From: Hyalangium minutum
Lineage (GTDB): Bacteria > Myxococcota > Myxococcia > Myxococcales > Myxococcaceae
Length of the DNA stretch: 64,000 bases
NCBI RefSeq assembly: GCF_000737315.1
Contig: NZ_JMCB01000002.1
Span: forward strand, 186,001-250,000
Direction: 5' to 3'
In this document: positions 13,410 to 36,140 of the stretch, piece after piece
How positions within the stretch are numbered: position 1 is the stretch's first letter
How the letters are laid out: each line of letters starts with the position of its first letter
Made by a program: the position numbers and the translations under genes
The notes under the pieces: model-generated
What the model was told of the DNA's origin: nothing
The model's database searches: none
The model's input: only the letters and a program-made list of their open reading frames with translations

Positions 13410-13430
13410 AGCTCTTCCTCTATCAACAAC

Positions 13431-15235
<1,805 letters not shown>

Positions 15236-15520: not shown

Positions 15521-15745
15521 GGGTCACCTCCGGAGACAGTTCTGCTCCAGTGGCCCGAGGAGTGCCAGGAGAACCTACCTGCTTGCCAAGCTGGGAGGGA
15601 CTCGCACGGACAGTGCGGGTAGCTGGCGCCTGGTGGGATGCTCGCCCAGGGGGCACTAGGACTTGCGGTCAATTGTCGGGTGGCGGAAAGGGTGTCCTCA
15701 GTTGAAAGGGTCCAGGGCAGCCTGACTGTTAGCGTCTGGCGCCTG

Positions 15746-18343
15746 ATGGACATCCCCCCGTTGCCAGACACCGCGAGCACCCCCGGTTTTGAGGGCCAGG
15801 GGCCGGCGGGCGGCCTCATGAGCGACGCCTTCCGGCTGCTGGCGGAGAGCATTCCCCAGCTCGTGTGGACCACCCGCCCAGATGGTTTCCACGACTACTA
15901 CAACCAGCGCTGGTACGAGTACACGGGGACCACTTCCACGCAGTCGCAGGGCGAGGGGTGGCAGGGGCCCTTCCACCCGGACGACATGCCGGAGGCGCTG
16001 CGGCGGTGGCACCACTCGCTGCGCACGGGTGAGCCCTATGAGACGGAGTACCGCTGCCGCCGCCATGACGGCGTCTACCGCTGGTTCCTGGGCCGGGCCC
16101 AGCCTCTGCGGGATGCGCAGGGGAACATCATCAAATGGTTCGGTACCTGCACGGACATTGACGACCAGAAGCGCGCCGCGGACTCCATGATCTTCCTGGC
16201 CGAGGCGGGGTCGCTGCTGGCCTCCTCTTCGCTGGACTATGAGGCCACGCTCGAGGCCCTCACCCGGCTGGTGGTGCCGCGCTTGGCGGACTGGTGTGGC
16301 GTCGAGATCGTCAACGCGGATGCCTCCACGCGGCAGGTAGGGGTGGCCCACGTGGATCCGGCCAAGGTGCGCTACGCCAAGGAACTGCGCCAGCGCTACC
16401 CGCCGCGCCCGGAAGATGCGCACGGCGTGCTCGAGGTCATCCGCACCGGCAAGGGCGAGTTTCTCCCAGACATCCCGGACGAACTGCTGGTGGCGGGGGC
16501 ACGGGACGCCGAGCACCTGCGCATCGCACGGGAGCTGGGGCTGCGCTCGGCCATGGTCGTACCGCTCACGGCCCGCGGGCGCACGCTGGGGGCGCTCTCG
16601 ATGGTGAATGCCGAGTCTCGCCGGCGCTTCACCCGCGAGGACTTCACATTGGCCGAGCAACTGGCCACTCGGGCCGCCCTGGCGGTGGACACCGCGAGGC
16701 TGTACCGCGATGCGCTGCACGCGGAGGAGCGCTTTCGCTCCCTCGTCACCGCCACGGCCCAGGCTGTGTGGGTGACGAGCCCAGAGGGAGTGGTGCAGGA
16801 GGACTCGCCCTCCTGGCGAGCCTTCACCGGCCAGAGCTACGAGGAGTGGAATGGCTTGGGCTGGCTCGACGCGGTCCACCCAGAGGATCGCGAGAAGGCG
16901 GCGCGCGCGTGGCGAGAGGCGGTGGAGCGGCAAGGGGCCTACGAGGTGGAGTACCGGCTGCGCCGTCCGGATGGGAGCTACAGCATCACAGGGGCGCGCG
17001 CGGTGCCTGTCCGGAACGAGAACGGGAGCGTGCGCGAGTGGGTGGGCATCACCACGGACCTGACCGCGCAGCGCGAGGCGGAGGCAGCGGCCCGCAGCCT
17101 TCAGGCCGAGCAAAGTGCCCGGCGCCACGAGGCGCTGCGCGCGGACGTGAGCGAGGCCCTCGCAGGGCAGGGAAGCAAGGCACAGCTCCTCCAGGCGGCC
17201 TGTGAGGCGGTGGTGAGGCACCTGGATGTCGCGCTGGCGCGTGTGTGGCTGTTGGAGCGGGACGCCCCGGAACTGCGGCTGGTAGCCAGCGCGGGGCGCT
17301 CCACGGACCTGGAGGGGGAGCATGCGCGCATCCCCTTGGGGGAGCATCGGCTCGGGCGCATTGCCCACGAGCGCAGGCCGCACATGACGAACGACCTGTG
17401 GCGTGAACCGGAGGCTGCGGATCGGGACTGGGCGCTCCGGGAGGGGTTGCGGTCGCTGGCAGGCTATCCCGTGGTGCTGGCTGAGCAGCTCGTGGGGGTG
17501 TTCGCGGTATTTGGCACCGAGCCCATCTCCCGCGAGGTGGCGGACACGCTCGCCGCGGTGGTGGAGATCATCAACCAGGGGGTGGAGCGCCGCAGGGCCG
17601 AGAGGGACTTGCGCCGGCATGCCGAGGAACTGTCGCGCTCCAATGAGGAGCTGCAGCAATTTGCCTACGTGGCCTCGCATGACCTGCAGGAGCCGCTGCG
17701 GATGGTGGCCAGCTACACGCAACTGCTGGCGCGGCGCTACCGGGGAAAGCTGGACGCGGACGCAGACGAGTTCATTGGCTACGCGGTGGACGGGGTGAAC
17801 CGGATGCAGCGGCTCATCCAGGACCTGCTCGCCTACTCGCGTGTGGGGACGCGAGGGCGGGAGTTCAAGCCATGCGCCGTCGGGCCGGTGGTGCAGCGGG
17901 CGGTGGAGAACCTGCGGAAGGTGATGGAGGAGGTGGGTGGGGAGGTGAGGGTCGGCGAGCTGCCAGCCGTGCTGGGGGACGAGACGCAGCTCATCCAGCT
18001 GTTCCAGAACCTGGTGGCGAACGCACTGAAGTTCCATGGCAAGGCGCCACCGCGGGTGGAGGTGGCGGCGGAGGCGCACGGGCGCGATGGGTGGCGCTTC
18101 ACGGTGAAGGACAACGGGCTGGGGATCGACGCGCAGTACTTCGAGCGCATCTTCATCATCTTCCAGCGGTTGCACGGGCGGGAGGAGTACCCGGGCACGG
18201 GGATTGGGCTGGCGATCTGCAAGAAGATCGTCGAGCGTCACGGAGGACGGATTGGCGTGGAATCTCGGCCGGGTGAGGGCTCCACGTTCTGGTTCACATT
18301 GCCAGCGGTACCTACCGAGGCCTCGGCCTCCAAGGCTTCATAG
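15746..18343 (+). CDS. Cytoplasmic PAS-GAF-PAS-GAF sensor histidine kinase
   Basis: Two PAS/PAC units ([26 protein letters not shown]), two GAF-like regions, H-box [11 protein letters not shown]-box [12 protein letters not shown]-boxes DNGLGID and GTGIGLAI. Start at ATG 15746 or 15818. Confidence 0.92.
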
Positions 18344-20019: not shown

Positions 20020-20706
20020 TCAGGTTGGCTGAGACAGTACACGTACGCGGCGACATTCACCGCAGACGAAAAAATAGAAAGCCACCTCTCCAGCGAAAAG
20101 CGGCTGATCGTCACCGAGGAGGCCAGACTTCCCTTCCATTCCCTCGTAGCCGAGACTAGCTGCGTAAGAAAGGTTTCTACCGCATGTGCAAATCGGCGAT
20201 ACAGGGGTTCCTACCCAGAGCGGAGATCCTGCAATCCTGAGAAATCCTTCGCCGCCTAAGAACTCATCACATGCGGACCAATAGCGATCCTCAGTCTCAG
20301 GGATCTCTTGCTCTTTCATCGGCCTGAGTTCGATCGGTCGTTCAGGCAAGGGGTCTGGAAGACGGTCTTCAATAGGGAGCAACTCGTCAACTGAACAATC
20401 CCCCTGAGCCCAATGGATCCGCCTTGATCGACTGTCGAACACATATTCTTGTACTGGCAGGTGTGAAGCGCAGTTCAAGAAAGTTATCAACGGCAGATGC
20501 GCAGTGTCTCTTGGAATGAAAGGGAAAAGGTAGGGCGCTCTCTTTAGATCGAGGGTGAGGAGTATAGAAGGCCGCGCCGGCCCAGAGAACGCCCCCTCAA
20601 TTGCCCAGGATTGTCCGCCAAAACAATGCGCAGAATCTTTTGAGCCAAGGACACCGATCCAACCGGGAATGGCTAGGGGCGGCCCCCATTTGAGAGAAAA
20701 GTTCAT
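20020..20706 (-). CDS. Putative immunity protein (YwqG/DUF1963-like) for the Rhs toxin
   Basis: Immediately downstream of the Rhs stop, with GGGGA before ATG 20706. C-terminal IAGSPLWV...ICTCG...FAGEVAFYFFVCGEC pattern resembles YwqG/DUF1963. Position fits the toxin-immunity rule. Confidence 0.65.
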   Translation of the reverse strand: MNFSLKWGPPLAIPGWIGVLGSKDSAHCFGGQSWAIEGAFSGPARPSILLTLDLKRAPYLFPFIPRDTAHLPLITFLNCASHLPVQEYVFDSRSRRIHWAQGDCSVDELLPIEDRLPDPLPERPIELRPMKEQEIPETEDRYWSACDEFLGGEGFLRIAGSPLWVGTPVSPICTCGRNLSYAASLGYEGMEGKSGLLGDDQPLFAGEVAFYFFVCGECRRVRVLSQPT

Positions 20707-20725
20707 ATCATTATCCCCGTGCACT

Positions 20726-23700
20726 CTAGCAGTCCTTCTTCCGCCGGATGTGATACTCGGGGAGCGTCTTGGCGTAGTCAAGCATCTCGCGTAGGCCCTT
20801 ATTGTATTTTCCGCCGAAGAGCTTTCTGACATCACGAATGTCTTTATACAAGCGCTCCCTGAAGAGCAGGTCTTTGTCAATCCTCATGGTGGCTTTCCCT
20901 TTGCCCGCGAACGTCCGGGTGAGCGCGTGATCTGCGTCGGTCATTCCCAGAGCGGGACCTTTGCCCCGGGAAAGCTTGATCTGTTCGAGGAATCTGTTCT
21001 GCGGCATGTGGTGTCCCACCTCGCCTGACTTCTTCAGGGCGTCAAGGACCCTAAAAGCCCCGCCTCTGTTGATGATGCCCATCAACCCCAGCGGGTCCAT
21101 CCAACAGAGCGGATCCGAAACGTACGCGTAAAGGTCTAACCCACCTTCAATCCTGATCGGATCCTGGCTGATGTATCGGCCGATGGAAGGGTCGTAGTAG
21201 CGGTGATAGTTATAATAGAGGCCAGTCTCACCATCCTCATACTGGCCTGGCCACCTCCAGGGACAAGTCGTTCGATAGGTCTCTGTACTGGCAACCCCGA
21301 GGATGTCTAGATGAGACCGCCAAGCTAGGCTCCCAGATTCATCATAGAGTTCCGTTGGCGAGCCAAGTTGATCCGTTACGGCCCAATATCGGCCCGAGGA
21401 GTCTTCTTTGCCGAGGAGCGCAAAGCTTTCCGGCTCAAAGAGCCAGGTTGTGATTCCAGAGTTGCTCGATATCTCATGCAGGACGGCATCCTGATCCCAT
21501 ACCCAGTGGGTCGATGATGATGACTTCTCGGGCCCGCTGACTGTCTTTACGAAGCAACGCTTGCTGATGCGCCTTCCGAATGGATCGTAGGTGAAGTGGA
21601 CACGTAGCCCATCGGAGCGTTTTGCTTCTCTCAAGGTGCCAGCGTCATCCCAGCTGTATTGCCAGGCCATGCCGCCGGGGACAGACTTCCTGATGAGATT
21701 GCCATCGGCATCATAAGTACACTGAACTCCGTGGCCACTTGAAAACTGTCCGCCGGGAAGATTGAAACAGGCTCCCTCCGGGGGATTGCGAGCAGTCCCA
21801 GTAGTACTGTGGCGGGTCTGTCCGTCTGGGTAATGAGCACTCGCAAGGCGGCCATGCAGGTCGTACTCGAAGCGTGTCGTGCCACGGGCCAAGTCGTCAA
21901 TATGGTTGAGGGTGGAGTCGCTCCGCCAAGCGAAAGACCGTTGTTCGAGTAGACCCTGGCTTCCATGGGTTCGTTGCTCAAGGGGCTCGCCGAGCGCTCC
22001 CCGAGCCCATCTGACCATGACGTTGCAAGGGAGATTTCTCCCTAGCTCAAGACCTGCTGGATCCCGGCTGAAAGCCACCTCCCAAGAGCGTTCTCGGCTA
22101 CCGTAGTGGAAGGACGCGACATCTCCTAACACGCTGCGCTTGATGAGTTGCTTGGCTCCATGTGAACTGCTCAGTTCAACGCGTTCGCCCATGGTGTCAT
22201 AGCGCGCTTTAATCCACGACTCCCCGCTCCTCTCTTCGATCAGGCGTCCGAGAGCATCGTGTTGAAAGGAGATGTTGACGTGCTCGTTCTGTGCGGCGCT
22301 GATAACACCGTCGGGCCTGTATTTGAATCTACGGAAAGAGTTGTCGGAGTATCTTACATGGGTGGGGCGCCCCATAGGGTCATACTCATACGTACTTGAG
22401 CGCCCGCTGGGGAGTTGCTCGCGTGCGAGGCGGCCCGCGAGGTCGTATGAATAGGTGCGAATGGCCCCATCAAAACCGATCTCGCGGGAAACCAAGCCTC
22501 GAGGGTCGAGTTCGAACACGAGCCGTTCTCCGTGTTCGTTCACCACCGCGACCAAGTTGTCTTCGGTGTCGTACTCGTAGCGGATGCGCCTCCCCGATTG
22601 CTCAACGGAGGCAAGCTTGTGGAAACCGACATACCCCAGATGTACGGTCTCATGAGGATCGGCAATCTCCAGAAGGTAGCCCTCCGGGTTGTATTTCAGA
22701 TCATAGATGGTGCCATTGGTCTCTGCGATGCGGGTTTGCCGCCCAAGAGCATCGTACCCAATAAGTTGCTCGGCTCCTGATGGATCGCGCGCATTGATAA
22801 TACGTCCAAGACGATCATACTTGTAGACCGTCTTGGTGCCATCGGGTGCGGTAATACAGGTGAGATTTTTGTAACTGTCGTACTCGAAAGCTGCGCATTG
22901 TCCCTCCGGACCAGTGACGAGCGCGAGCAACCCCCCGGAGTAGTGATACTCGTAGAGTGCCCCTTGTGGATTCGTCCTTGCTATGAGGTTTCCACGGAGA
23001 TCATGCCTCCAGTTCCATACGCCACCCGTCGTATCAATAGCTCCAGTTAATAGGTTTCTTGAGTCGTATGAAAGAGTGAATGATGAGTCATCAGGTAAGT
23101 GGATTTTGACGCGGTTGCCGCGGGAGTCGTACTCAAAGTGAGTCTCATGACCATGAGGATTGACCGCGAGAGTTTGGCGCAAGAATTGGTCGTACTCGTG
23201 TTTCCATTCCCCGCCTAGGGGATCAATCTCTCTGACAACGAGTCCTTGCCTACAATGATAGGTGGTTGTGTGGCCAAGGGAGTTCGTGACGAGCGTGATC
23301 TCATGTGTCTTGTCATACGCAAGGCTGTGGTCGTATATCCCCCCATCGCCCCAGGTTCGGATGCACCAGGCCTCTGCGGTTTTTCCATCGTACTCAAAGT
23401 GAAAGCTCAAGCCTGAACGATCTGTTTCTCGGGTCAGTAAGTGGTTGCTGTATGTGTAGCGAAAGTGATTGCCGAGCGCGTCAGAGGCCTCGAGCAAGTC
23501 ACCTGCGTCGGAATAGTGGTAATGGTTGTGAAGGACCAACCCCGGTTGGGTAGGATGCGGCAGCCATACTTTTGTAAGCCGGTGGTTATTATCGTGCTCA
23601 AAACGCACGCGCCGATCTACAGAGTCTGTGAGCCACTCTAAGCACCCATGCTCGTCGTACTTGTAAGTGATGAAGTCGCCCTGGCGATTTTGTGATCTCA

Positions 23701-24757
23701 CCACGTGATATCGCCCTTGAGGTACCAACTGACGGAAGTCGTGTACCAACCCGTCATGCGTCTCAATGGACCAACGCGACTCACTCAGGCGTCTCAAGGT
23801 TAAGCGATTGATAGGGTCATGGATTTCAGTGCCTACAGGCATTCTCCCTCGTGGAGCGCCTGTGGCAGGGAACTCGATCTCGCGCCCATCTTCGGAGCGG
23901 TAGACGACCTGTGCATCTTCTTCCCAGACGGCCATGTCAAGAGAGTGGCTCCATCCGTATCCCAGCGTGGAATCTCTCCAGGAGAGACTTGAAGAGTAAT
24001 TGCGTTCGAATTTGAGAGGGAGCGGCCCTGGAATCTCCCAGTCCAAAGCCTCGGTGACCGTTCTACCCGTGGCGACATCCACGGGATGTCCCGTGAAGTT
24101 GCAAATGCGCTTATGGATCCAGTCGCGCGCGCGTTTGCTCAACTTAAGCTTGTCCATCAGCTTGTCGGCCGCCTTGTGGATACGATCTGACAGCTTTTTC
24201 ATCTTGCGGCTGGCTTTTTGTAGTTTGCGCAGCTTTTTGAGCCCTTTGAGAAGTGCTCCCAACGCGAACTGCGTCAGCATTCCCATCAGAGAGATGGTTG
24301 GCGGTCCCCCCACGCGGACAGGCGGTCCGGCGGGGATGGAGAGGACGATGGAAGAGGGCAGCAGGAGTGTTTTCGCAGCCGGGCCACGCTTTCTCGGGGG
24401 AGAGGGCATGCCAATGTCCTGGCAGCTGAGGACCGGCAGCGTCATATTGGTGAAGGCATCCCCATCTACCGCCACCGTGGCGCTGCCCATGAAAGTCTCA
24501 TTCTCATTGGCGGGCGGCTTAGCGAAGACGCCTCCGATGGGGAAGTGTGGTGGGAGTTCGACGCCTCCCGTGCCAGCCTGGGCCCGCGGCAGGAAGTTCA
24601 CGTTCACCGTGGAACCGATGACGGGGATGTAATCGAATGGATCGAACACCATCCCGATGTGTGGATGGGGAATCGGTATCACTGGCCCAGGAGGGGTAAT
24701 GATGAGGTGAATATCCACTCCCAGGATGGGATCCATGTGCTTTGTCGCTGGCATCAT
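20726..24757 (-). CDS. rhs: Rhs polymorphic toxin: PAAR-like N-terminus, DUF6531, YD/RHS repeats, C-terminal toxin
   Basis: GHPVDVATG (DUF6531-like), LGYGWSH, many YxYDxxGR repeats, core end YNYHRYYDPSIGRYISQDPI and PLCWMDPLGL. ATG 24757 has GGGAGG upstream and an ATGA overlap with the previous gene. Confidence 0.92.
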   Translation of the reverse strand: MMPATKHMDPILGVDIHLIITPPGPVIPIPHPHIGMVFDPFDYIPVIGSTVNVNFLPRAQAGTGGVELPPHFPIGGVFAKPPANENETFMGSATVAVDGDAFTNMTLPVLSCQDIGMPSPPRKRGPAAKTLLLPSSIVLSIPAGPPVRVGGPPTISLMGMLTQFALGALLKGLKKLRKLQKASRKMKKLSDRIHKAADKLMDKLKLSKRARDWIHKRICNFTGHPVDVATGRTVTEALDWEIPGPLPLKFERNYSSSLSWRDSTLGYGWSHSLDMAVWEEDAQVVYRSEDGREIEFPATGAPRGRMPVGTEIHDPINRLTLRRLSESRWSIETHDGLVHDFRQLVPQGRYHVVRSQNRQGDFITYKYDEHGCLEWLTDSVDRRVRFEHDNNHRLTKVWLPHPTQPGLVLHNHYHYSDAGDLLEASDALGNHFRYTYSNHLLTRETDRSGLSFHFEYDGKTAEAWCIRTWGDGGIYDHSLAYDKTHEITLVTNSLGHTTTYHCRQGLVVREIDPLGGEWKHEYDQFLRQTLAVNPHGHETHFEYDSRGNRVKIHLPDDSSFTLSYDSRNLLTGAIDTTGGVWNWRHDLRGNLIARTNPQGALYEYHYSGGLLALVTGPEGQCAAFEYDSYKNLTCITAPDGTKTVYKYDRLGRIINARDPSGAEQLIGYDALGRQTRIAETNGTIYDLKYNPEGYLLEIADPHETVHLGYVGFHKLASVEQSGRRIRYEYDTEDNLVAVVNEHGERLVFELDPRGLVSREIGFDGAIRTYSYDLAGRLAREQLPSGRSSTYEYDPMGRPTHVRYSDNSFRRFKYRPDGVISAAQNEHVNISFQHDALGRLIEERSGESWIKARYDTMGERVELSSSHGAKQLIKRSVLGDVASFHYGSRERSWEVAFSRDPAGLELGRNLPCNVMVRWARGALGEPLEQRTHGSQGLLEQRSFAWRSDSTLNHIDDLARGTTRFEYDLHGRLASAHYPDGQTRHSTTGTARNPPEGACFNLPGGQFSSGHGVQCTYDADGNLIRKSVPGGMAWQYSWDDAGTLREAKRSDGLRVHFTYDPFGRRISKRCFVKTVSGPEKSSSSTHWVWDQDAVLHEISSNSGITTWLFEPESFALLGKEDSSGRYWAVTDQLGSPTELYDESGSLAWRSHLDILGVASTETYRTTCPWRWPGQYEDGETGLYYNYHRYYDPSIGRYISQDPIRIEGGLDLYAYVSDPLCWMDPLGLMGIINRGGAFRVLDALKKSGEVGHHMPQNRFLEQIKLSRGKGPALGMTDADHALTRTFAGKGKATMRIDKDLLFRERLYKDIRDVRKLFGGKYNKGLREMLDYAKTLPEYHIRRKKDC

Positions 24758-26052
24758 GAGGCCTGACCTCCCTTGGTGTTCTTTGGCCGCCAATCCTCGC
24801 CAAGTACGGAGGCGATGGAGGATTCCAGTTCGTGCTCGCCAGGGCGGCCGCGACCGAGTCTCAGCAGCGCCTCACCTACGTAGGGGAGTGTCGAGCTGGC
24901 GCGCGCTTCATCATTCATGGAGCTACCAACCTCCCAAGCACGCTGGCTGAGAGCCCAAGCTTGGTCCGGCTCTCGGGCCATTTCCCGGCACCAGCTCGCC
25001 ATTCGCCAGCACTCGAGTTCCATGGGCGGATCCTTGAGCTCATGAGCCAGAGAGGCCGTGCCCTGGTAGAGCGTGGCGGCTTGTGTGTACTGCTCGGTTG
25101 CCACCAGCGCGGCTCCTTGTGCCATGCGCGACTTGAGCCGCAGCGTTGCTCCTTGAGGATTTCCCTGTTCCTCAGCAGCGGCCGCTGCCGTCTCGGCTTG
25201 TTGATAACGGCTCAGCGCTTCCTGGGGCTTTTGGGTTGCGAGGAGTGCACTGCCCATGACGAAGTGAGCTGTCACCACCAGCGGGTGCCAGCCTTGTGAG
25301 TGCGCCAGCTCCACGGCCTGGGCGCCCAGCCGCTCTGTCTTCGCGGTATCTCCCTTCGACGCGGCATGGCTCATGCGGACGAAGAGATCCCTGAACTGCC
25401 CTCCAGGCGTATTCAGCTGACCTGCCTCCTTCGAGAGTTCCTCCAGGGCTCTTCCCATCTCCAGCCGTGCCACCTGGGTGACGACCCTCTCCGGAAGGGC
25501 TTGGGCCAGGGGCTCCAGCGCGAGAGTCCGGGCGTCATCGAGCACCACGATGCGAACGTGAGTGGCCTGGGCGTTTTCGACGGTCTGGCGCAGCCACTTC
25601 AGCCAAGCACCGTCATCCGCGACGTACTTCGGTATTAGTACGGCGACGAGGTGTTCGCACAAGCTTGCGTAGTGCTCTCGCAACGATGCGCATACCATGA
25701 GAAAAGTGTCCGCGTCCGACTGCCCTCCTGAGAGCGTTGGACACTGCCAATTCGCAGGCAAGCCTGCCTCCGCTAGCCCAACTCGGCTCTCTTGCTCCAT
25801 GGAGAGCAGGGCCTCGCGCAGTTCATCCCCGTACTTGGCTGGGTTCAGGAAGGGAATATCGAAGCGCAGGAAGAGGTCTGGGATCTCGCCCGTGCGCTCG
25901 TCACTCTCCGCCGCCAGAAAGGCTTCCACCATCCGCACTTCGCTCGATTCCACCACCCAACGCAGCAGGCGTGCATCAGGTATCTGGGCGAACTCTGTCC
26001 ATTGGTCATGAAGCAGTTCCAGTCGTTTCATGACTGCGTTCTTCTTGCTCAT
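24754..26052 (-). CDS. Uncharacterised 432-aa protein with C-terminal TPR-like helices between vgrG and rhs (candidate adaptor/chaperone)
   Basis: ATG 26052 lies 28 bp after the vgrG stop and the stop overlaps the rhs ATG. Helical repeats such as QEALSRYQQAETAA and TQAATLYQGTA. No motif of DUF4123, DUF2169 or DUF1795 recognised. Confidence 0.75.
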   Translation of the reverse strand: MSKKNAVMKRLELLHDQWTEFAQIPDARLLRWVVESSEVRMVEAFLAAESDERTGEIPDLFLRFDIPFLNPAKYGDELREALLSMEQESRVGLAEAGLPANWQCPTLSGGQSDADTFLMVCASLREHYASLCEHLVAVLIPKYVADDGAWLKWLRQTVENAQATHVRIVVLDDARTLALEPLAQALPERVVTQVARLEMGRALEELSKEAGQLNTPGGQFRDLFVRMSHAASKGDTAKTERLGAQAVELAHSQGWHPLVVTAHFVMGSALLATQKPQEALSRYQQAETAAAAAEEQGNPQGATLRLKSRMAQGAALVATEQYTQAATLYQGTASLAHELKDPPMELECWRMASWCREMAREPDQAWALSQRAWEVGSSMNDEARASSTLPYVGEALLRLGRGRPGEHELESSIASVLGEDWRPKNTKGGQAS

Positions 26053-26080
26053 GGGGGGCTCCGAGGGCTTTCCCACGCGG

Positions 26081-28231
26081 TTATTGACCGCTGTCTGCGG
26101 GGGTAGGTGCCGTGGGCATGGCCTCGGCCGGCTCAGATGGCGCGGTGGGCTTGGCGCCACTCCCGTCCAGCGCCGCCCCCCCGCTGTTGAGGTTCACCAT
26201 CATTCCGGTCACGGATACACCGGTTGCATCAATCGTGATGAAATTGCCCCCTACCTTCAGCGTGAGCCCTGTGTCCGCCTCGAGGACGATCTTGTCCGAC
26301 TTCAGGTGGATCTCGCTATCTGCCTGCAGGGCATGAATCCCGGTAGCCTTCACTTGAAGGTCCGCTCCCAACGTGATGGACCAAGTTCCGTCTATTTTTT
26401 CGTTGCGGTTGCCCACTACCGTCAGATGGCTGTCTGCGCCCACTTTTTCCGTGCGGCTGGCTTTGACAACGACGTCTGCATTGCCAGGCCCATCAATGCC
26501 GCCCACCAGAAGCTTCCAGTCTCCTCCGATATGGTCCTGGCTATTGCGGTGGACCTTCAGGTTTTTGTCCCGGTAGACCATCTCGTTCTGGTCGCCGACC
26601 TTGCCGTTCTTGCTCTCGGAACCGATGGTCTGATGCCGGTCATGGAGGATGTTCTCAAGCGAGTCGTTTTTGACGTGCACGTCCATGTTGCGCTCGGCGT
26701 GCACGAAGAGCTGCTCGGACTTCTTGCGGTCCTCGAAGCGGATTTCGTTGTAGCCATCTCCGCCCTTGGAACTGTTCGATTTGAGCGTGCTCTTGGTCTT
26801 CTGGTCGGGGAGCTTGTATGGCGGAGGATTGTCACCGTTGTACACGCGCCCGGTGATGATCGGTCGGTCCGGATCTCCCTCGATGAAGTCGACAATGACC
26901 TCGTGACCGATTCGCGGAATGTAGATGGCCCCCCAATGCTGACCCGCCCAGGCGTGGCTCACGCGGATCCAGCACGAGCTGTTCTCGTCCTTCTTCCCCT
27001 CGCGATCCCAGTGGAACTGGACTTTGACGCGGCCGTGCTCATCCGTGTGAATCTCCTCGTTCTTTGGACCGACCACGACGGCGGTCTGCACCCCCCGGAC
27101 GATGGGTTTCGGTGTCACTCGAAGAGGCCGGTAGGGTGTCTTCGCCACGATGCAGGAGAAGTGGTTGGAGTAGCTGAAGTCGCCTCCGCCGGATTCCTCG
27201 TCCAACACCTGGGGCTGATAGCCTTGATGCCCCACGCTGGTGATGAGATATCGGGTGTTGAAGTCGCCGCGCGTGTGATCCGCCAGGGTGAACATGAAGC
27301 CTGGCGTGAGGCGCTCGCAGTCGCTCTCGCCGAACCCTGTCTTGCGGACCGTCTGCCACTCCTCGAGCCGGATTTGGGCAATCGTCTCGCCCTTGGCGGT
27401 AGATCCCCGCCCTGGCAACTGGTACTCGCCAGGGTAGTCGTACACCATGAGATCTGGGTCCTTCTCGGCCTGGAACTTGCCCTCGGTGGACAGCGTGGGC
27501 TTCTTGAAATTGAAGTCCCGGAGCATCACCTGGCCAGGCTGGATCTCCTCGCTGAAGCGGAACCGTTGGACGTGGTCCTCCGTGATGACAGTTCCCGAGA
27601 CGCGCCGGAACGGCACGGTCTCCCCCCGCTTGCCGGCAGGGATGGGCTTGCACGCAGCCGCGCTGTCGCCCATGACCAGGACGTGTTTCGCCGCCGAGTG
27701 CTCAAAGAAGTAGAAGATGCCGTCCTCTTCCAGTAACCGGCTGATGAATGCCCAGTCCGACTCCCGATATTGCACACAGTAGTTGCGGGGCTCGTAGGAA
27801 CCGGTCAGTGCAAATTTGAAGCAATCGCTCGGGATGCCCGCCTTCTTGAGTACTTTTGTGATGATCTGCTCGGTGGTCTCGTCCTGGAAGATGCGGTTGT
27901 CATGGCGGTGCTTGAGTTTCCACACCTGAGGAACCACGGTGACCTGGTAGATCGCGTTCCGCGGCAGGTTGTTGACCTGCTCGAAGCGGCTCACGATTCC
28001 ATGGATGAACCGCGGTTGCCCCTCACTCATCAGGCTGAGCAAGGCAGGCTTGCCCATCACGCTCGCAAAGTCGATCGCGGGGTCCTCGCAAGCAACCTCG
28101 AGCTGGAGCTCGAACTGGCTGGAGATGGACTCATGACCAGAGAACCGGATCACGAGCAGCTTCTCAGGGCACCCGGAGATGGCGAATTGAAACAACAAGA
28201 GATTGCCGGTGGTGGTAGATCTTGCGTCCAT
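26081..28231 (-). CDS. vgrG: T6SS spike protein VgrG
   Basis: FSGHESISSQF, YCVQYRESDWAFISRLLEEDGIFYFF, YDYPG, DEHGRVKVQFHWDR, WIRV, IPRIGHEVIVDFIEGDPDRPII, NEIRFED. No evolved C-terminal effector domain. Confidence 0.96.
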   Translation of the reverse strand: MDARSTTTGNLLLFQFAISGCPEKLLVIRFSGHESISSQFELQLEVACEDPAIDFASVMGKPALLSLMSEGQPRFIHGIVSRFEQVNNLPRNAIYQVTVVPQVWKLKHRHDNRIFQDETTEQIITKVLKKAGIPSDCFKFALTGSYEPRNYCVQYRESDWAFISRLLEEDGIFYFFEHSAAKHVLVMGDSAAACKPIPAGKRGETVPFRRVSGTVITEDHVQRFRFSEEIQPGQVMLRDFNFKKPTLSTEGKFQAEKDPDLMVYDYPGEYQLPGRGSTAKGETIAQIRLEEWQTVRKTGFGESDCERLTPGFMFTLADHTRGDFNTRYLITSVGHQGYQPQVLDEESGGGDFSYSNHFSCIVAKTPYRPLRVTPKPIVRGVQTAVVVGPKNEEIHTDEHGRVKVQFHWDREGKKDENSSCWIRVSHAWAGQHWGAIYIPRIGHEVIVDFIEGDPDRPIITGRVYNGDNPPPYKLPDQKTKSTLKSNSSKGGDGYNEIRFEDRKKSEQLFVHAERNMDVHVKNDSLENILHDRHQTIGSESKNGKVGDQNEMVYRDKNLKVHRNSQDHIGGDWKLLVGGIDGPGNADVVVKASRTEKVGADSHLTVVGNRNEKIDGTWSITLGADLQVKATGIHALQADSEIHLKSDKIVLEADTGLTLKVGGNFITIDATGVSVTGMMVNLNSGGAALDGSGAKPTAPSEPAEAMPTAPTPADSGQ

Positions 28232-28311
28232 AGGAAGGGTCCTCTGCAAAGGCGAAGCGTGGGTGCAGCGGATAGAGTCAGTGAACGGGACGGGCGTGGG
28301 CTTGGAAGCGC

Positions 28312-29040
28312 TCAGCCACCAAGGACAGGAGAGAGGCGGACGTAGCGGCGGCCTTGGACTTGCTCGAGCATGAATGCAGCGACGTCGGCCCGGGAGATGC
28401 CTTCGGGAACTTCGGCCCAGCCGACGGAGACTTCGTAGTTTCCGCGGGCAGGCTCATCCGTCAGCCACGTGGGCCGGACGAGCACCCACTCCAGGGGCAA
28501 CCCGCGGATGGAGTCCAACTGCTGCTCCCAGGCATTGACGCCGGGCGTTCCAAGGAACGGGGCGAGCAATCTGCCCAACAGCCCTCGGCGAACCCAGCCT
28601 TCCTTTTTCGGCGGAGGAGCCAGGCAGATGAGCCGATAGACCCGGTACTTCTGCATCGCAGCCACGATGTTTTCCGTGGCTTTGAGCAGCGCTTCAGCCC
28701 CCTTGCGCCCTGGGAACCCGAGCGCGGAGAGCACGGCTCTTTGCCCTAGCATGGCCGCATCCACCGCGTCTGGATTCAGCACATCGCCTTCGATGACATG
28801 GAGTTTGGGATGCCTCGCCGGCAGTGCTCTTCGGTCCCGTACGAAGGCTGTGACGGTATGCCCCGCGGACAAGGCCTGATTGACCACGTGGCGCCCCGTT
28901 CGCCCCGAGGCTCCAAAGACGAGCAATGGGACTGGCAACTCCTCGGCTTTCTGTTCACGGGTCGGTCCGTAGGCAACCGTGTTCCCGAGTCCAATGACGG
29001 AGACGGTAAACATGTCGTCTGGCTTGTCCATGGTGAACAC
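28312..29040 (-). CDS. NAD(P)H-binding atypical SDR (flavin/biliverdin reductase B-like)
   Basis: Rossmann GASGRTG, IEGDVL, WVLVRPTWL, ISRADVAAFML. Exact start uncertain (29040, 29031 or later). Confidence 0.85.
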   Translation of the reverse strand: MFTMDKPDDMFTVSVIGLGNTVAYGPTREQKAEELPVPLLVFGASGRTGRHVVNQALSAGHTVTAFVRDRRALPARHPKLHVIEGDVLNPDAVDAAMLGQRAVLSALGFPGRKGAEALLKATENIVAAMQKYRVYRLICLAPPPKKEGWVRRGLLGRLLAPFLGTPGVNAWEQQLDSIRGLPLEWVLVRPTWLTDEPARGNYEVSVGWAEVPEGISRADVAAFMLEQVQGRRYVRLSPVLGG

Positions 29041-29056: not shown

Positions 29057-30088
29057 CTACGGCCGGACTTCCGCTGTCTGCGCGGCAGGAACAGGGGGCA
29101 CGCCCATCGGCTTCGGCTGGAGCGGTGCCTCCAGGGGGGTTGGAGAGGAGGCAGGCGTCCAGAGCTTCGCGCCCGCCAGTAGCTCCGGCTCCATCAGCTT
29201 CACCCACAGCGAGGGGATCGTCCCCACCAGCCGGGCATTCTTCACTGCAAGCACGCGCTGGGCCTGCGCGCGCCGGTACAGCAGCGGCGGCAGCGAGGGC
29301 TCTTGAGGATCCAGGTTGTGCATCACCACCTGCTCGTCGAGCACGATGCCCTCGGGCTTCACGGCCAACGTCGAGGTGAACTCGACCTTGCGCTGCAGGC
29401 CGTTGGGCAGCGTGAGCGTTTCCTCTCGGCTCAAGGGGAACCACGCAGGGCCCAGGCAGGATCCATCCTCGCTGCTCGACACGGCCTCGGCGAAGAAGCG
29501 GCCCTGGCGCAGCGGCAGCACGCGCGCCATGCGGCGGCAAACGGGCGGACCCTCATCCGTGCAGACATCCCCCTCCGCCACCAGCACGGTGATGTCCCCG
29601 GCCTGCTCCAGGCGCAGGCGCGACTGGCGCGGGTAGGCGCGCAAGCTTCCCAGCGCACGGACGACAAAGCCTTGCGAGGTCCGCTCGACCAGCCCGACAG
29701 GCCCCAGTCCCTCTCCATTGTCGAACCGGCGTGCGACGACCCAGACCAACCGGAGGTCGGCGCGCACGGTTTCCAGCACGAGATCCTCCTCGGTGAGCCG
29801 TCCCGGAGGCGGGAGCGCCTTGGGCTCCGGGCCGGACTCGCGGCACTCCGCCGCCTCGGGCTCCCGCCACATGACGGGTACTCCCGAGCAGTCCACGGTG
29901 GGAGAGGGAGCAACACCCTGCTCGCGGCTGAACCCATGCAACAGCAGGGCGAACCAGTCGTCCGGGGTGGGCACGATGCGATCGGACATCGCGGCCTCGG
30001 CGATGCACAGCTTGGGCTGAGGCCGCGTCGAGCAGGCGGCGAAGAGGCTGCAAAGTCCTGCGATGACAAGGATTGGCTTCGTGTTCAT
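29057..30088 (-). CDS. Uncharacterised Cys-containing lipoprotein directly downstream of tssG
   Basis: MNTKPILVIAGLCSLFAAC lipobox from ATG 30088. An alternative in-frame ATG at 30142 overlaps the tssG stop (ATGA). Several spaced cysteines. Confidence 0.75.
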   Translation of the reverse strand: MNTKPILVIAGLCSLFAACSTRPQPKLCIAEAAMSDRIVPTPDDWFALLLHGFSREQGVAPSPTVDCSGVPVMWREPEAAECRESGPEPKALPPPGRLTEEDLVLETVRADLRLVWVVARRFDNGEGLGPVGLVERTSQGFVVRALGSLRAYPRQSRLRLEQAGDITVLVAEGDVCTDEGPPVCRRMARVLPLRQGRFFAEAVSSSEDGSCLGPAWFPLSREETLTLPNGLQRKVEFTSTLAVKPEGIVLDEQVVMHNLDPQEPSLPPLLYRRAQAQRVLAVKNARLVGTIPSLWVKLMEPELLAGAKLWTPASSPTPLEAPLQPKPMGVPPVPAAQTAEVRP

Positions 30089-30138
30089 GAGGGTCTCAAG
30101 TCTGGAGAGGGGGGATCCAGTCGGCGGGCGTCGAGTGA

Positions 30139-31182
30139 TCATGCAGCCCCCGGAACGGACAGCCGGTTCTGGCGATTCGTGCCCAGCCACGTGTCCCGGC
30201 CGAGCTTCGAGGCCCAGCCGGTAGTGAGGCTGAAGGTATGGGAGAGGCTCTCGGCGAGGATGAGCTCGAAGGTGTATTCGAGCGGATCCCGGACGAAGAG
30301 CGAGACGATCTCGCGCGCGAGCGGGTACAAGTCCCCGTCCGCCATGAGGCGGCGCCAGGCTCGCGGGGAGAGCGGGCCGATTTCCACCTGGAAGCGCCCC
30401 ATGCGGTCGAATGCCCTGCCGCCTAGCAGCATGTTGCGCCCGAGCAGGTTGTTGACCACGCCCAGCTGCGCGCGAGCGTCGATGTCTACCCAGCGGCCCA
30501 CGAACTGCCGGACGGTGACACGTGCACCCTCTAGTTCCTCGGAGAGCACCTCCTGCAAGGCAATCTCCAGCTTTTCGGCTGTGCGGATGCGGCTGACCAA
30601 CAGGGAGGCGATCCGCAAGAGCCGCCAAGGCGGCAGAATCCCAGGCCAGGTTCGCTCGTACGTGTCGAAGCCCGACAGAGCCAGGAGGCGGCGGGACCAC
30701 TGATCGGTGCAGCTCGCCGTCAGCTCGCGGGTAACGCGGTATCGCGATTCGATGCGATACAGGAGTGACAGGAGCCGGTGATGAAACAGGTCCAGGAACT
30801 CCCGCTGTGTCGCGTCATCCGGATCCTCCTGGGCCACCTCCTCAGCCATGAAGAGCGGCAGAGGCGAGGCAGAGCCTGTGAGTCCCAAGAAGGTCGTCGA
30901 GACCTCGAACAGGGGCCGCCGGCTGAACTCATCGTCCTGACGAACGGGCACCTGCCGGAGCACGACCGCACTGACATCGCTCGAAGAGAAACCGAGCGAC
31001 GGATCATGCCGGAAGCGGATGCGCTCCTCGTTCACCGGCCCCAGCTCGCCTACGCGAGCTGCGTCCGAGGTGAGGCGCTCGAGGAACGCCACCAGCGGGA
31101 AGAACCCTGGCCGACGAGGCGCCCGGAGGATGATCTCCGACGCCTCTACAAGGTCAACTGGGAGCCGTTCCGCGGTGGCCAC
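30139..31182 (-). CDS. tssG: T6SS baseplate TssG
   Basis: IRFRHDPSLGF, FLGLTGSASPLP, FLDLFHHRLLSLLY, VRQFVGRWV, LGRDTWLG; follows tssF. Confidence 0.93.
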   Translation of the reverse strand: MATAERLPVDLVEASEIILRAPRRPGFFPLVAFLERLTSDAARVGELGPVNEERIRFRHDPSLGFSSSDVSAVVLRQVPVRQDDEFSRRPLFEVSTTFLGLTGSASPLPLFMAEEVAQEDPDDATQREFLDLFHHRLLSLLYRIESRYRVTRELTASCTDQWSRRLLALSGFDTYERTWPGILPPWRLLRIASLLVSRIRTAEKLEIALQEVLSEELEGARVTVRQFVGRWVDIDARAQLGVVNNLLGRNMLLGGRAFDRMGRFQVEIGPLSPRAWRRLMADGDLYPLAREIVSLFVRDPLEYTFELILAESLSHTFSLTTGWASKLGRDTWLGTNRQNRLSVPGAA

Positions 31183-32888
31183 GTGTACTCCATGTGTGAA
31201 GGCTGGAGCCGGATGCCCAGCTCATTGAAGGAATTGACGGTCACGTTCGAGGCGAACAGCTCGTCGAGGATGCAGCCGAAGAGGAACGCGTCCCCGGCTC
31301 CTAGAAAGCTCGTCTCATCGAGCGCCGCCGTGACGCGGTTGCCGCGCAGCGGGCTGCCCTCGAGGAAGCGCGTCCCCGCTCGGACCTCGACGGAGCGGAT
31401 GGCGTTGATGCGCAGCCGGGTGGCCCGCGCCGCCAGGTCATCCGTGAGCCCCTTGAAGTTGTAGAGCTCGAGCAGCCGGCGCAGCACCTCCACATCCGAG
31501 AGGGTCTGCTGGTTCACCGCCAGGTGAGAGAGCAGCCGCCAGTGGAGTTCCGTGCCGAGTGGCGCACGCGCGGGCCGGCTCACGGGGGAGATGTTCTTGA
31601 AGCGCGCGTTCGTCGGAGAGGTGATGGTGGGCAGGTGGACATCCCCCACCTGCAGCCGCGTGGGGAGCGAGCGGTGCGTACACGTGAGCTCGATGGACAG
31701 CGTCTCCTCCTCGATGGAGGGCATCACGTCCCGGGGCGTCTCCAGCGACAGATACGTGTCGATGCCGTCGTCAATGGGCGACGCCGCCCTGCGCAGGCGG
31801 TAGAAGGCAGGCTCCACGCCGTGCCCCGCGGCGTGGGCAAACTCGAAGAAGGGGCGGTAGGTGCGCCGCTCGTTGGCCCCGGCCTGCAGGCCGATGACCG
31901 AGTCCACCGAGAAGATCTCCATGTGCCTCGGCTCGACGCCTTCGGCGCGCAGGAGCTGGTCGTGGGACAGCACACTGTGGCGCAGAGGGTGCGCGGAGGC
32001 AGAGAAGAGGTTGACCGCAGGCGTGCAGTAGAGGCGGAACATCTCCTGGCCCACGCGCGCCTCCAAAGGGGGCGGGCGCTCGAACTGGAAGGCCAGCTCG
32101 AACCGGTCGCTCGCGATGTGCTTTGCGGCATCCAGCCCCCGTACCTCGAAGAAGAGGAACTTCTCCGGCAGGGTGAAGTACTCCTGGAGCTGCCGATAGC
32201 CCTCGGCGGAGCGAGGCCAGGGCAGCATGCGGAAATCCCGATCGAACCCCAGCGGGTGGATGGCCCGAGGTCCGAGCTGGACGGACTTCCCGAAGTCGTT
32301 GTTGACCTGGACGCCGCGGCAGTAGCGCAGCAGCCACAGGAGCATGAGGGCGCTGGTGGCCAGCTCGGCGTGGATGAACAGCCGCAGCCCCTCGGCCCGG
32401 AAGATCTCCGGATAAATCTGCTCGTGGGCCTGGAAGAAGAGCCGCAGCACGGGGGAGGTGACAGACGACTTGTCGAGCAGCGCCTCCTCCAGCGTCAGCG
32501 GGAGCAGCTCCACATCCGAGGTGGTGCGGAAGACGCACGAGGTGCCATCGAGCGGGCGTGCCCCAATCTCCACCCCGGCGGGGATGGTGGCCCGGCCGCG
32601 CAGCGCCTTCACCTGCGGGGTGAACTCGATGACGGTGGAGGCGGGGACGGGCCGCAGGTAGTGCGGCAGCAGCAGGTCCGTCAGGACATGGACCATCTCT
32701 GGCACGTCGTCGTCCACGCGCTCGCGGATGCGCGCCGTCAGGAAGGCGAAGCCCTCGAGCAGCCGCTCGACGTCGGGATCCGCGCCACGCTCCACGAGCA
32801 TGCCCGCGACGCCGGGGTTGGCCAGGCCGAACGCGCGCCCCATTTCCCGGAGGTAGGCCAACTCGCTCAAGAAGTACTTGCTGAACAT
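31146..32888 (-). CDS. tssF: T6SS baseplate TssF
   Basis: YFLSELAYLRE, DPDVERLLEGFAFLTARI, LLPHYLRPVPA, LQEYFTLPEKFLF, LYCTPAVNLF. Confidence 0.96.
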   Translation of the reverse strand: MFSKYFLSELAYLREMGRAFGLANPGVAGMLVERGADPDVERLLEGFAFLTARIRERVDDDVPEMVHVLTDLLLPHYLRPVPASTVIEFTPQVKALRGRATIPAGVEIGARPLDGTSCVFRTTSDVELLPLTLEEALLDKSSVTSPVLRLFFQAHEQIYPEIFRAEGLRLFIHAELATSALMLLWLLRYCRGVQVNNDFGKSVQLGPRAIHPLGFDRDFRMLPWPRSAEGYRQLQEYFTLPEKFLFFEVRGLDAAKHIASDRFELAFQFERPPPLEARVGQEMFRLYCTPAVNLFSASAHPLRHSVLSHDQLLRAEGVEPRHMEIFSVDSVIGLQAGANERRTYRPFFEFAHAAGHGVEPAFYRLRRAASPIDDGIDTYLSLETPRDVMPSIEEETLSIELTCTHRSLPTRLQVGDVHLPTITSPTNARFKNISPVSRPARAPLGTELHWRLLSHLAVNQQTLSDVEVLRRLLELYNFKGLTDDLAARATRLRINAIRSVEVRAGTRFLEGSPLRGNRVTAALDETSFLGAGDAFLFGCILDELFASNVTVNSFNELGIRLQPSHMEYTWPPRNGSQLTL

Positions 32889-32910
32889 GAAATGCCCTCG
32901 GACTGCTGGC

Positions 32911-33306
32911 TCACCACAGATCGATTTGGCTGTTTCGCCCCAGCCGCGTGTAGAAGCGGATGGGCCGGCGGGAACCCCGGTGCACCAGTTGTGCGGAGAC
33001 CTCGAACTTGAGGCTGGTGGGGTCCAGCTCGTCAGGAACGTGAAGGACGGCGACGTTCTTCAGGCGCGGCTCGTATTCCTGGATGGCCTGCCGCAGAGAC
33101 ATCTGCATCCGCTCGATGGCGGACGGGAACGTGTGGATGATGTCGTTGAAGTCCATGATGCCAAAGCCGGGCGCCGCCACGGACTCCCCCTTGCGGGTGT
33201 TGAACAGCACGCGCAGGTGCTGGGTGACCTCCTCGACGGGATCGCCCCGCCGCGAGGTATGCACATCGCCACTCTTGATTCGGGAGAAGAGGCCGCGGGT
33301 CGCCAT
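32911..33306 (-). CDS. tssE: T6SS baseplate TssE (gp25-like)
   Basis: HLRVLFNTRKG, FGIMDF, IQEYEPRLKNV; located between hcp and tssF. Confidence 0.93.
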   Translation of the reverse strand: MATRGLFSRIKSGDVHTSRRGDPVEEVTQHLRVLFNTRKGESVAAPGFGIMDFNDIIHTFPSAIERMQMSLRQAIQEYEPRLKNVAVLHVPDELDPTSLKFEVSAQLVHRGSRRPIRFYTRLGRNSQIDLW

Positions 33307-33322
33307 GGGTGTGGAACCTCCA

Positions 33323-33355
33323 GGGGAGCGCCCGATGCCGAAACGGGCGCCCCCC
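33323..33355 (-). other. GC-rich stem-loop between hcp and tssE (attenuator or mRNA stabiliser)
   Basis: Minus strand GGGGGGCGCCCG-tttcggcat-CGGGCGCTCCCC: 12-bp stem with one G-U pair, no poly-U tail, just before the tssE GGAGG. Confidence 0.55.
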
Positions 33356-33366
33356 TGAAGCGGGAG

Positions 33367-33858
33367 CTAGCGCTGCTGGCTCCAGGAATCCTCGTGCGTC
33401 ACGCCACCGTTGGTGTACGTCCAGCTGATGGTGTGGAACACGAACGTGAGCTCCTCGAGGGCCGGATCCTTCGAGGTGGCCGGGACGATGGTGTCCGGCA
33501 CCACGTGCTTGATGGTGTTGATGCGGCCCTGCTTGAACGTCGTCGTGTAGAACTGCTCCGTCGTGCCGTCACCGGTCGGGTTCGGGCGGAAGAACTTGAA
33601 CGTCGCCTCGATGACCTGGTTCTCGCACAGCGCCTTCATCAGCAGCGGCGTGGACTTGTCGATGCGCTTACGGATGAGCAGCGGCTGGTACTGGCGCCGG
33701 CCCGTGGCGAGGCCGGAGCCGGACTCGCGCGCGGTGATGACGCCCTGCTCGTAGTAGACGCACTCGATGGAGCCTTCGCGGCCCAGGCTGACCTGGGTGC
33801 TCTCGCCCTTGATCTCCGTGCCGTTTGCCTTCAAGTAGAGATGTACTGTCTCGGCCAT
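33367..33858 (-). CDS. hcp: T6SS tube protein Hcp (TssD)
   Basis: HLYLKANGTEIKGES, GRRQYQPLLIRKRIDKSTPLL, FHTISWTY, EDSW. Confidence 0.96.
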   Translation of the reverse strand: MAETVHLYLKANGTEIKGESTQVSLGREGSIECVYYEQGVITARESGSGLATGRRQYQPLLIRKRIDKSTPLLMKALCENQVIEATFKFFRPNPTGDGTTEQFYTTTFKQGRINTIKHVVPDTIVPATSKDPALEELTFVFHTISWTYTNGGVTHEDSWSQQR

Positions 33859-33894
33859 TTCTGCCTCGTTGGGACTGCGGGGTGGGTTGCTGAA

Positions 33895-33916
33895 CCGGGC
33901 CCGTTGCCGGGCCCGG
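33895..33916 (-). other. Perfect 9-bp hairpin with GCAA (GNRA) tetraloop upstream of hcp
   Basis: Minus strand CCGGGCCCG-GCAA-CGGGCCCGG, ending 36 nt before the hcp ATG. Confidence 0.6.
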
Positions 33917-33988
33917 CGGTGATGAGGACTTCACCGGCTGCCTGGTGCGACGACAGCCAGTCCTCTCCCGCTCCAGAGGGAGCGAGGA

Positions 33989-35476: not shown

Positions 35477-35498
35477 GGGTGGTTTTCCTCGGGAGGGG

Positions 35499-36008: not shown

Positions 36009-36140
36009 CTGCGGCCAATCCTTTGTTGGGTACGAGGGTTGAGGTGCGGACTGCGGTACGGCGGGTGAAAAGACAGACGGGGAGCCAGACGGCGCGCGGA
36101 GCGGCCGCGGAGTGAGGACTTCCGTGTGGACACGGCACCG

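Follow-up and report, generated by a model that had tools for sequence, protein, structure and literature searches.

A tetratricopeptide-repeat protein encoded directly 5′ of a divergent PAAR-type domain, a candidate chaperone or loading factor for type VI secretion spike tips

What does a protein encoded between the spike gene vgrG and an rhs toxin gene do for type VI secretion, and which of its neighbors does it serve? The question is raised by a 64,000-nucleotide stretch of the genome of Hyalangium minutum (positions 186,001 to 250,000 of contig NZ_JMCB01000002.1, assembly GCF_000737315.1), hereafter referred to as the window, in which a gene that we call X lies between vgrG and rhs in a type VI secretion system (T6SS) locus. 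The X gene (24754..26052, minus strand, stop codon included) runs from an ATG at 26052..26050 to a TGA at 24756..24754, encodes 432 amino acids and is preceded, 6 nt 5′ of its ATG, by a GGAG ribosome-binding site (26059..26062, minus). vgrG (26081..28249, minus; its 5′ end taken as that of the longest open reading frame [ORF], with a TTG start) ends 28 nt 5′ of X, and the start codon of the 1343-aa rhs effector gene (20726..24757, minus; ATG at 24757..24755) overlaps the X stop codon in an ATGA tetranucleotide (24754..24757, minus) that points to translational coupling. An earlier note on this DNA, prepared from the letters of the sequence, had described just such an ATGA-coupled 432-aa ORF between vgrG and rhs, and the sequence bears it out. 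Since one search retrieved 57 homologs (35-73% identity) and a second, exhaustive one yielded 736 clusters at 50% identity (E ≤ 1e-3; 326 of them at E ≤ 1e-30), X is a genuine gene rather than a chance ORF of a genome of 65.5% GC. As detailed below, the X protein is probably devoted to a single divergent clade of zinc-type PAAR spike-tip domains, which it would serve as chaperone or loading factor.

The gene order around X homologs carries most of this argument. Loci were collected from species genomes (16 loci) and from metagenomes (28 loci, metagenome scan with alignment A4), further loci being added later, and all were scanned with custom hidden Markov models (HMMs) of X, of VgrG, of the Rhs core and of residues 1-165 of Rhs. 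A PAAR-type domain was encoded directly 3′ of X, on the same strand, in 45 of the 46 loci having downstream DNA. At the 43 related loci where the junction was measured, the window being left aside, the X stop codon and the PAAR start codon overlapped by 4 nt in 18 cases; the overlap was 1 or 7 nt in a further 13, and in 8 others the two codons were separated by 1-28 nt. VgrG, in contrast, was encoded within 400 nt 5′ of X in only 18 of 37 informative loci. The conserved unit is thus X followed by a PAAR-type domain, and not the vgrG-X-rhs arrangement that the earlier note had expected to find nearly always; besides Rhs, the PAAR partner carries EndoU, Ntox50, HNH or WHH toxins, or stands alone.

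In a reverse test, ten PAAR-type proteins were picked without regard to X and their contigs were fetched, which revealed an X homolog directly 5′ of nine of them (HMM E-values of 1e-64 to 1e-151). These partners covered Rhs, EndoU and Ntox50 fusions as well as one stand-alone 145-aa PAAR, behind which a WHH/colicin-DNase toxin and a SUKH immunity protein are encoded by genes of their own. Both T6SS-iii-type and T6SS-i clusters were represented among the X-PAAR loci of the test, the EndoU, Ntox50 and stand-alone PAAR loci belonging to clusters of low GC content and of the T6SS-iii type of Bacteroidota (TssC PF17541, TssD PF17642). The tenth protein (P0294, locus L051) proved to be a second, downstream PAAR copy in an operon that begins with a remote X-like gene. 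Overall, X was found in Myxococcota, in Saprospirales, in an Aquincola metagenome-assembled genome (MAG) of the Betaproteobacteria, where the order is vgrG-X-PAAR, and in a Krumholzibacteria MAG, where it is X-PAAR; the GC content of the loci ranges from 36 to 75%. Paralogs of X within one genome each sit beside a PAAR-Rhs gene of their own, as seen in Cystobacter fuscus (L010, L015) and in an Archangium MAG (L001, L002, L003, L006). Tandem PAAR-Rhs genes devoid of their own X occur at L042 (4781..12757), L040 (13959..14153), L029 (2705..6640) and L051 (6001..6693), and the near identity of the two PAAR domains of the L042 tandem Rhs genes, which share one X, suggests that one X serves several effectors.

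The partner domain occupies residues 1 to about 152 of the Rhs protein of the window (24302..24757, minus), as delineated from alignment A5, weak Pfam matches and the names given to relatives by their sources. It harbors an N-terminal AAKHxDPvxGxDxH motif (AxKHxDPxxGxDxH), a proline-rich PPGPVPPVPIPHP(H/F) motif, which reads PIPHPH in the window, and an LSC motif. Exactly three histidines (H17, H31 and H71) and one cysteine (C112) are invariant in 20 diverse copies of the domain (alignment A5), and PAAR proteins bind zinc through three histidines and one cysteine (PMC5014421). The mean column identity of the 20 copies is 70%, and the mean pairwise identity at the same loci reaches 63.5% for the PAAR-type domain, compared to 33.8% for X and about 40% for VgrG. 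Pfam matches in these copies were weak, Tox-PAAR-like/DUF4150 (PF13665) being detected in 6 of 20 (best E-value 9e-4; 0.68 for the copy of the window) and PAAR_motif (PF05488) in 3 of 20, while the databases from which relatives were drawn list them under 'PAAR domain-containing protein' or 'Zn-binding protein involved in type VI secretion' (COG4104). The domain was seen fused to EndoU, Ntox50, HNH, WHH/colicin-DNase and LHH toxins, and also in the form of proteins of about 145 aa, of which that of L050 is genuinely stand-alone. Because its coupling to X holds whatever the toxin, the presence of Rhs or the T6SS subtype, the PAAR-type domain is likely to be the ligand and binding partner of X.

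The predicted fold of X is compatible in one half with such a binding role. An AlphaFold2 model of the full-length protein, built on a 30-sequence alignment (pLDDT 91.7, pTM 0.77), comprises an alpha/beta domain over residues 1-210, in which five strands (residues 29-34, 59-64, 134-139, 166-173 and 190-194) alternate with helices, followed by about ten tetratricopeptide repeat (TPR)-type helices over residues 216-417. TPR arrays are peptide- and protein-binding modules. The array of X (residues 216-432, about 10 helices; 24757..25407, minus) was assigned from Pfam, PDB profile and Foldseek results, and holds the conserved motifs ECWRMA (347-352) and STLPY (387-391) and the conserved residues G418 and W421. 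The window protein scored 29.8 bits against Pfam TPR_12, just below the cut-off of 30.1; among 60 diverse family members, TPR_12 was matched by 46 and TPR_MalT by 30, with only TPR families found by Pfam. Searched against the PDB, the family profile retrieved TPR structures only (consensus TPR structures at 1.5e-7), and a Foldseek search with the full-length model likewise returned only TPR proteins, such as LGN/Pins, KLC and Rap, with E-values of about 1e-6 for the TPR domains of LGN/Pins (1.7e-6) and KLC; X itself had no match in NCBIfam or among PDB sequences. By profile and by structure, X is thus a member of the TPR repeat superfamily, in line with the TPR-like C-terminal half that the earlier note had proposed.

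The N-terminal domain (residues 1-215; 25408..26052, minus) was modelled separately (model mab14eff5f11f, pLDDT 89.5), the Foldseek search with the full-length protein having been swamped by TPR matches. Its nearest neighbors in the PDB were RdrA, ORC/Cdc6, MalT, CED-4, Apaf-1 and Avs4, with E-values of 2e-4 to 1e-2 and TM-scores of 0.38-0.56, so that the model gives a weak but consistent signal of likeness to AAA+/STAND NTPases. A Walker A motif (G4xGK[ST]) was found in none of 244 family members, making an enzymatic NTPase role unlikely, and the loop at the expected Walker A site is just 1-2 residues long. The segment VRIVVLDDA (residues 165-173), whose RIVVLDDA portion is the fourth strand, looks like the remnant of a Walker B motif, a Walker-B-like hhhhD[DETS] pattern being kept in about 100 of the 244 members. 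The domain is at best a degenerate AAA+/STAND relative and no active P-loop NTPase, and, judging from its sequence, X is almost certainly a degenerate, nucleotide-free 'NOD plus TPR' protein. The alpha/beta N-terminal half that the earlier note had recognized from RIVVLDDA thus stands, with the amendment that this half is not a generic alpha/beta domain but a degenerate AAA+/STAND-like one devoid of a P-loop.

Neither half of X relates to the adaptor families with which it was compared. No match to DUF4123 (PF13503) was obtained at E ≤ 0.01 with the full-length protein or at E ≤ 10 with its N-terminal half, and neither the full protein nor its N-terminal half matched DUF2169 (PF09937), DUF1795 (PF08786) or DUF2875 (Tla3-type, PF11394) in Pfam. 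All four families were absent among the 25 most-matched families of the 60 diverse members (Pfam, E ≤ 1), NCBIfam yielded no adaptor match in X, and the top 50 Foldseek PDB matches were TPR proteins (full-length X) and AAA+/STAND NTPases (N-terminal domain), with no T6SS accessory protein among them. X is thus outside the four classic adaptor families by sequence, as had been surmised from its lack of their motifs, and its fold also differs from theirs. Literature searches found no T6SS adaptor or chaperone of the TPR type, since PMC9635880 mentions TPR with regard to FAN1, and no TPR- or STAND-like accessory protein is mentioned in a 2026 review of T6SS accessory factors (PMC13584744), in a PAAR census (PMC8651086) or in a survey of adaptor markers (PMC7714669). 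One possible overlap with a described, uncharacterized protein is the TagA of the GA1/GA2 systems of gut Bacteroidales, described as PilF-like, i.e., TPR-like (PMC13584744; PMC4714493); all proteins retrieved in a profile search with the Bacteroidota X subfamily were environmental or from Saprospirales, and none bore a Bacteroides or Parabacteroides name. X is apparently undescribed as a T6SS accessory family. The notion of an undescribed accessory protein tied to a PAAR-like Rhs therefore holds as to its novelty and is strengthened by the cross-phylum linkage, the Rhs part giving way to the PAAR-type domain as the constant partner.

From genomic association and by analogy with other systems, we infer physical binding of X to its partner, a chaperone, adaptor or loading role, an assignment of ligands to domains and the non-secretion of X. 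In the proposed sequence of events, translational coupling would produce X and its partner in a fixed ratio, and X would bind the PAAR-type N-terminal domain of the effector, here the Rhs toxin, at its PIPHP face. X has many invariant Trp and Phe residues, and its partner an invariant Pro-rich PIPHP patch. X may then keep the proline-rich, partly hydrophobic PAAR cone soluble and able to cap the VgrG trimer, or else guide it there, and would probably stay behind in the cytoplasm when the system fires. Binding is likely to take place in the groove of the TPR array, and the N-terminal domain, a putative nucleotide-free AAA+/STAND remnant, may now serve as a scaffold or second binding surface. 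A wider version of this proposal, to which we give somewhat better than even chances, has X as an unrecognized multi-phylum family of PAAR-specific T6SS chaperones or loading factors, counting hundreds of clusters and derived from a STAND NTPase that lost its P-loop, that would be required to mount the PIPHP clade of zinc-type PAAR domains, whatever the toxin, on VgrG in both the T6SS-i of proteobacteria and myxobacteria and the T6SS-iii of Bacteroidota.

Several points weigh against these proposals. For canonical PAAR proteins, binding to VgrG is reported to require no helper (PMC11883445), and the need of the PAAR-type domain for one is deduced from synteny. The PAAR fold of the partner is itself putative, as it is drawn from weak matches in Pfam, the naming of relatives by their sources and the pattern of His and Cys residues; a profile of the domain had no meaningful match among PDB sequences. 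The sole exception to the X-PAAR linkage is an orphan X from a Fibrobacteria MAG (L016, 9983..11377), within 10 kb of which no PAAR, Rhs or VgrG is encoded; nearby genes code for secreted cadherin-like/LamG proteins, a GntR regulator and a DUF4423 protein. In a mirror-tree analysis, the correlation between X and PAAR (0.95) was no higher than that between X and VgrG (0.95), with a value of 0.91 for PAAR and VgrG; all values being phylogeny-driven, this measure of co-evolution is uninformative. Finally, the metagenomic protein P0063 (1812 aa) is a single chain in which an X-like domain (16-412) is connected by a Gly/Ala-rich linker of 45 aa to a PAAR-type domain (from M476), DUF6531 and Rhs repeats. 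It could be a natural fusion, lending weak support to the pairing of X with PAAR, or the product of a 1-nt frameshift at the ATGA overlap or of a gene-calling artifact.

The best surviving alternative, although an unlikely one, is that X acts as a bridging adaptor akin to Tap/DUF4123, the PAAR domain not being its main ligand. In the window, as in about half of the loci, the X gene is indeed flanked by vgrG and the effector gene, and the two domains of X recall the two-lobed build of Tap adaptors, which combine a VgrG lobe with an effector lobe (PMC11582642). The patchy adjacency of VgrG, however, argues against a purely Tap-like VgrG tether; moreover, X persists with non-Rhs effectors and with the stand-alone 145-aa PAAR, and the PAAR-type domain is the only element constantly beside it. 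X may contact both PAAR and VgrG.

The earlier note had also considered that X might shield a hydrophobic helix of its Rhs partner. The Rhs protein of the window does have, in a linker of residues about 153-222 that precedes DUF6531 (24092..24301, minus; read from the translation), a helix of moderate hydrophobicity, ISLMGMLTQFALGALL, and then a Lys-rich stretch. X could on this basis be an Eag-like chaperone that covers a membrane-active helix located after the PAAR-type domain until secretion, much as Eag chaperones shield the transmembrane domains of prePAAR effectors (PMC7773334), and the N-terminal AxKHxDPxxGxDxH of the partner recalls the prePAAR motif. We regard this as improbable because the helix after the PAAR-type domain is absent from many partners: it is missing or not hydrophobic in partners from Bacteroidota (P0276, P0279) and in stand-alone 145-aa PAARs (P0274, P0268), all of which still have X encoded 5′. 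In addition, the segment of the window contains K, Q and T residues and is placed after the PAAR domain rather than before it, and X has no DUF1795 match.

About as improbable is a role of X as a STAND-like sensor, of the NOD plus TPR kind found in MalT, that would control T6SS assembly, firing or effector expression. This would account for an architecture like those of MalT, Apaf-1 and Avs, and for the position of X at the head of the core T6SS operon in some Bacteroidota clusters. Against it stand the absence of Walker A throughout the family and of any effector or DNA-binding output domain detectable with Pfam; moreover, the stop/start overlap and the one-X-per-PAAR pattern of the paralogs suit a stoichiometric partner better than a regulator. 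A still slimmer chance is given to X being a secreted structural component or co-effector that rides the spike and acts in the target cell. X is encoded within a spike/effector operon, and some T6SS adaptors are themselves secreted, such as the RIX adaptors (PMC10435454), but Pfam found no toxin-like or enzymatic domain in X, neither a variable region nor an adjacent immunity gene tracks it, and a 48-kDa globular protein on the tip would presumably blunt the spike. An immunity function was rejected, X being located 5′ and conserved whatever the toxin, while immunity genes (Imm50, SUKH, MafI2) lie 3′ of the toxins.

Turning to the locus itself, vgrG, X and rhs form the end of a complete minus-strand T6SS-i cluster, whose core genes were assigned with Pfam to positions 30139..42600, 5′ of the operon: tssJ (41932..42600), tssK (40571..41935), tssL (39845..40537), tssM (36141..39842), tssC (33989..35476), hcp (33367..33858), tssF (31146..32888) and tssG (30139..31182). 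The vgrG product matches Phage_GPD (5e-92), Gp5_trimer_C and Phage_base_V in Pfam and TIGR03361 (4.9e-199) in NCBIfam. The deposited gene call for X (P0001, 394 aa) begins at the GTG of V39 and leaves out 25939..26052 (minus). Residues 1-38, which form the first helix and part of the first strand, are conserved across the family, R10, W18, F21, W32 and E38 being invariant (alignment A1), so that the ATG at 26052 is favored as the better start and the deposited annotation is probably truncated at its N-terminus. The Rhs product, identified by Pfam and NCBIfam matches (RHS_repeat, 3e-68; DUF6531; Rhs_assc_core), consists of the PAAR-type domain, the linker, DUF6531, a YD-repeat shell, an Rhs-associated core ending in DPLGL and a C-terminal toxin. 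The 118 residues of the latter, which follow the DPLGL cleavage motif (20726..21079, minus), had no match in Pfam or NCBIfam. An ORF located just 3′ of rhs (20020..20724, minus; about 234 aa when trimmed to begin after the rhs stop codon) had no family match either; 50%-identical relatives lie 1-2.3 kb 3′ of Rhs genes at L006 and L007, and the ORF is a candidate immunity or orphan-module gene. Between tssG and vgrG lie an NAD(P)H-binding (NmrA-like) gene (28312..29040, minus), an unusual passenger within a T6SS cluster, and a 547-aa ORF without family match (29057..30700, minus) that is overlapped by a 466-aa ORF on the opposite strand. The cluster is flanked on one side by a gene for an 1865-aa protein with many bacterial Ig-like domains (Big_13, Big_3_3, Big_6; 44595..50192, plus) and on the other by one for a 901-aa PAS/GAF histidine kinase (15638..18343, plus), neither of which has an obvious tie to X.

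Some of the related loci display features of their own. Low-GC clusters of the Bacteroidota type have an extra small ORF of 70 aa or 164 aa, without Pfam match, between X and the PAAR-toxin gene (L045, 6493..6705; L046, 1254..1466; L047, 2081..2575), and its product may be a second accessory component. At L053, a gene located 3′ of a vgrG-X-PAAR-Rhs-immunity module (10940..12382) encodes 480 aa that include FHA domains and match DUF4123 weakly; its product may unite a T6SS regulator (Fha) and an adaptor domain in one chain. At L049, from a Saprospirales MAG (9332..13725), clpV is broken up into two or three ORFs, as is tssC, and the HMM matches the PAAR-type gene in a second frame as well; this assembly probably holds frameshift errors, which makes its '147-aa stand-alone PAAR' unreliable and leaves L050 as the clean example.

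The T6SS helper families known to date are Eag/DUF1795, Tap/DUF4123, DUF2169/Tvp, DUF2875 and the Bacteroides Ate adaptors. By analogy with these, X would represent a new structural form within a known functional class, that of T6SS effector chaperones and adaptors, with strong genomic support for the association and a function that we infer from it. Should the proposed role hold, X would add a helper family structurally unrelated to the known ones, and even zinc-type PAAR tips could need a helper, as opposed to the current view that they bind VgrG unaided. X would then also be a rare accessory factor common to T6SS-i and T6SS-iii, and would illustrate how a signaling NTPase scaffold (NOD plus TPR) can be turned into a binding protein that does without nucleotide. 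In practical terms, X followed by a PIPHP-type PAAR could be used as a marker with which to mine polymorphic toxins in Myxococcota, Bacteroidota and uncultured phyla; Rhs, EndoU, Ntox50, HNH, WHH and LHH toxins have already been seen behind X-PAAR in the sampled loci.

Compared to known systems, X resembles STAND NTPases with TPR sensors (MalT, Apaf-1/CED-4, Avs; TPR_MalT PF17874) in the succession of an NTPase-like alpha/beta domain and a TPR array, in its Walker B-like strand VRIVVLDD and in its Foldseek matches to MalT, CED-4, Apaf-1 and Avs4. It differs from them in lacking a P-loop, a helical 'arm'/WH module and an output domain, and in its size (about 430 aa as opposed to more than 800), and the structural likeness is weak, the TM-scores quoted above not exceeding 0.56 and the E-values being no better than 2e-4. 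With the Eag/DUF1795 chaperones (PMC7773334), X shares the status of an effector-specific gene directly 5′ of PAAR-containing, often Rhs, effectors, and Eag stays a model for the shielding of a hydrophobic element until loading. Eag proteins are, however, small (about 150 aa) and bind transmembrane helices located between prePAAR and PAAR, whereas X has no PF08786 match, and its partners have no hydrophobic helix ahead of PAAR and, in many cases, none after it. Like the DUF4123 adaptors Tap/Tec (PMC11582642), X is a two-lobed accessory protein encoded between vgrG and an effector, with paralog-specific pairing; unlike Tap, whose N-lobe binds the C-terminal helix-turn-helix of VgrG and which accepts diverse cargo effectors, X tracks the PAAR-type domain.

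The likeness to DUF2169/TvpA (PMC11883445; PMC13373197) extends further. PIPY (DUF4150) domains depend on DUF2169 proteins for assembling a spike with VgrG, and these proteins bind a hydrophobic patch of proline and aromatic residues (PMC11883445). In both cases a non-canonical PAAR-like domain is encoded directly 3′ of the accessory gene, vgrG-accessory-PAAR-like effector being a frequent order, and the accessory gene stays with that domain whatever toxin is fused to it; a proline-rich motif, P(I/V)P(aromatic or His), is conserved in the partner domain, and the proposed role is to keep a tip domain fit to cap VgrG. The two differ in that X has no PF09937 match and combines AAA+/STAND-like and TPR parts, whereas the DUF2169 fold was termed novel by its authors, in that the partner of X keeps the pattern of three histidines and one cysteine whereas PIPY domains have no zinc site, and in the occurrence of the X family in both T6SS-i and T6SS-iii-type clusters. 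By analogy, DUF2169/TvpA would thus be the closest functional precedent for X, reached from an unrelated fold.

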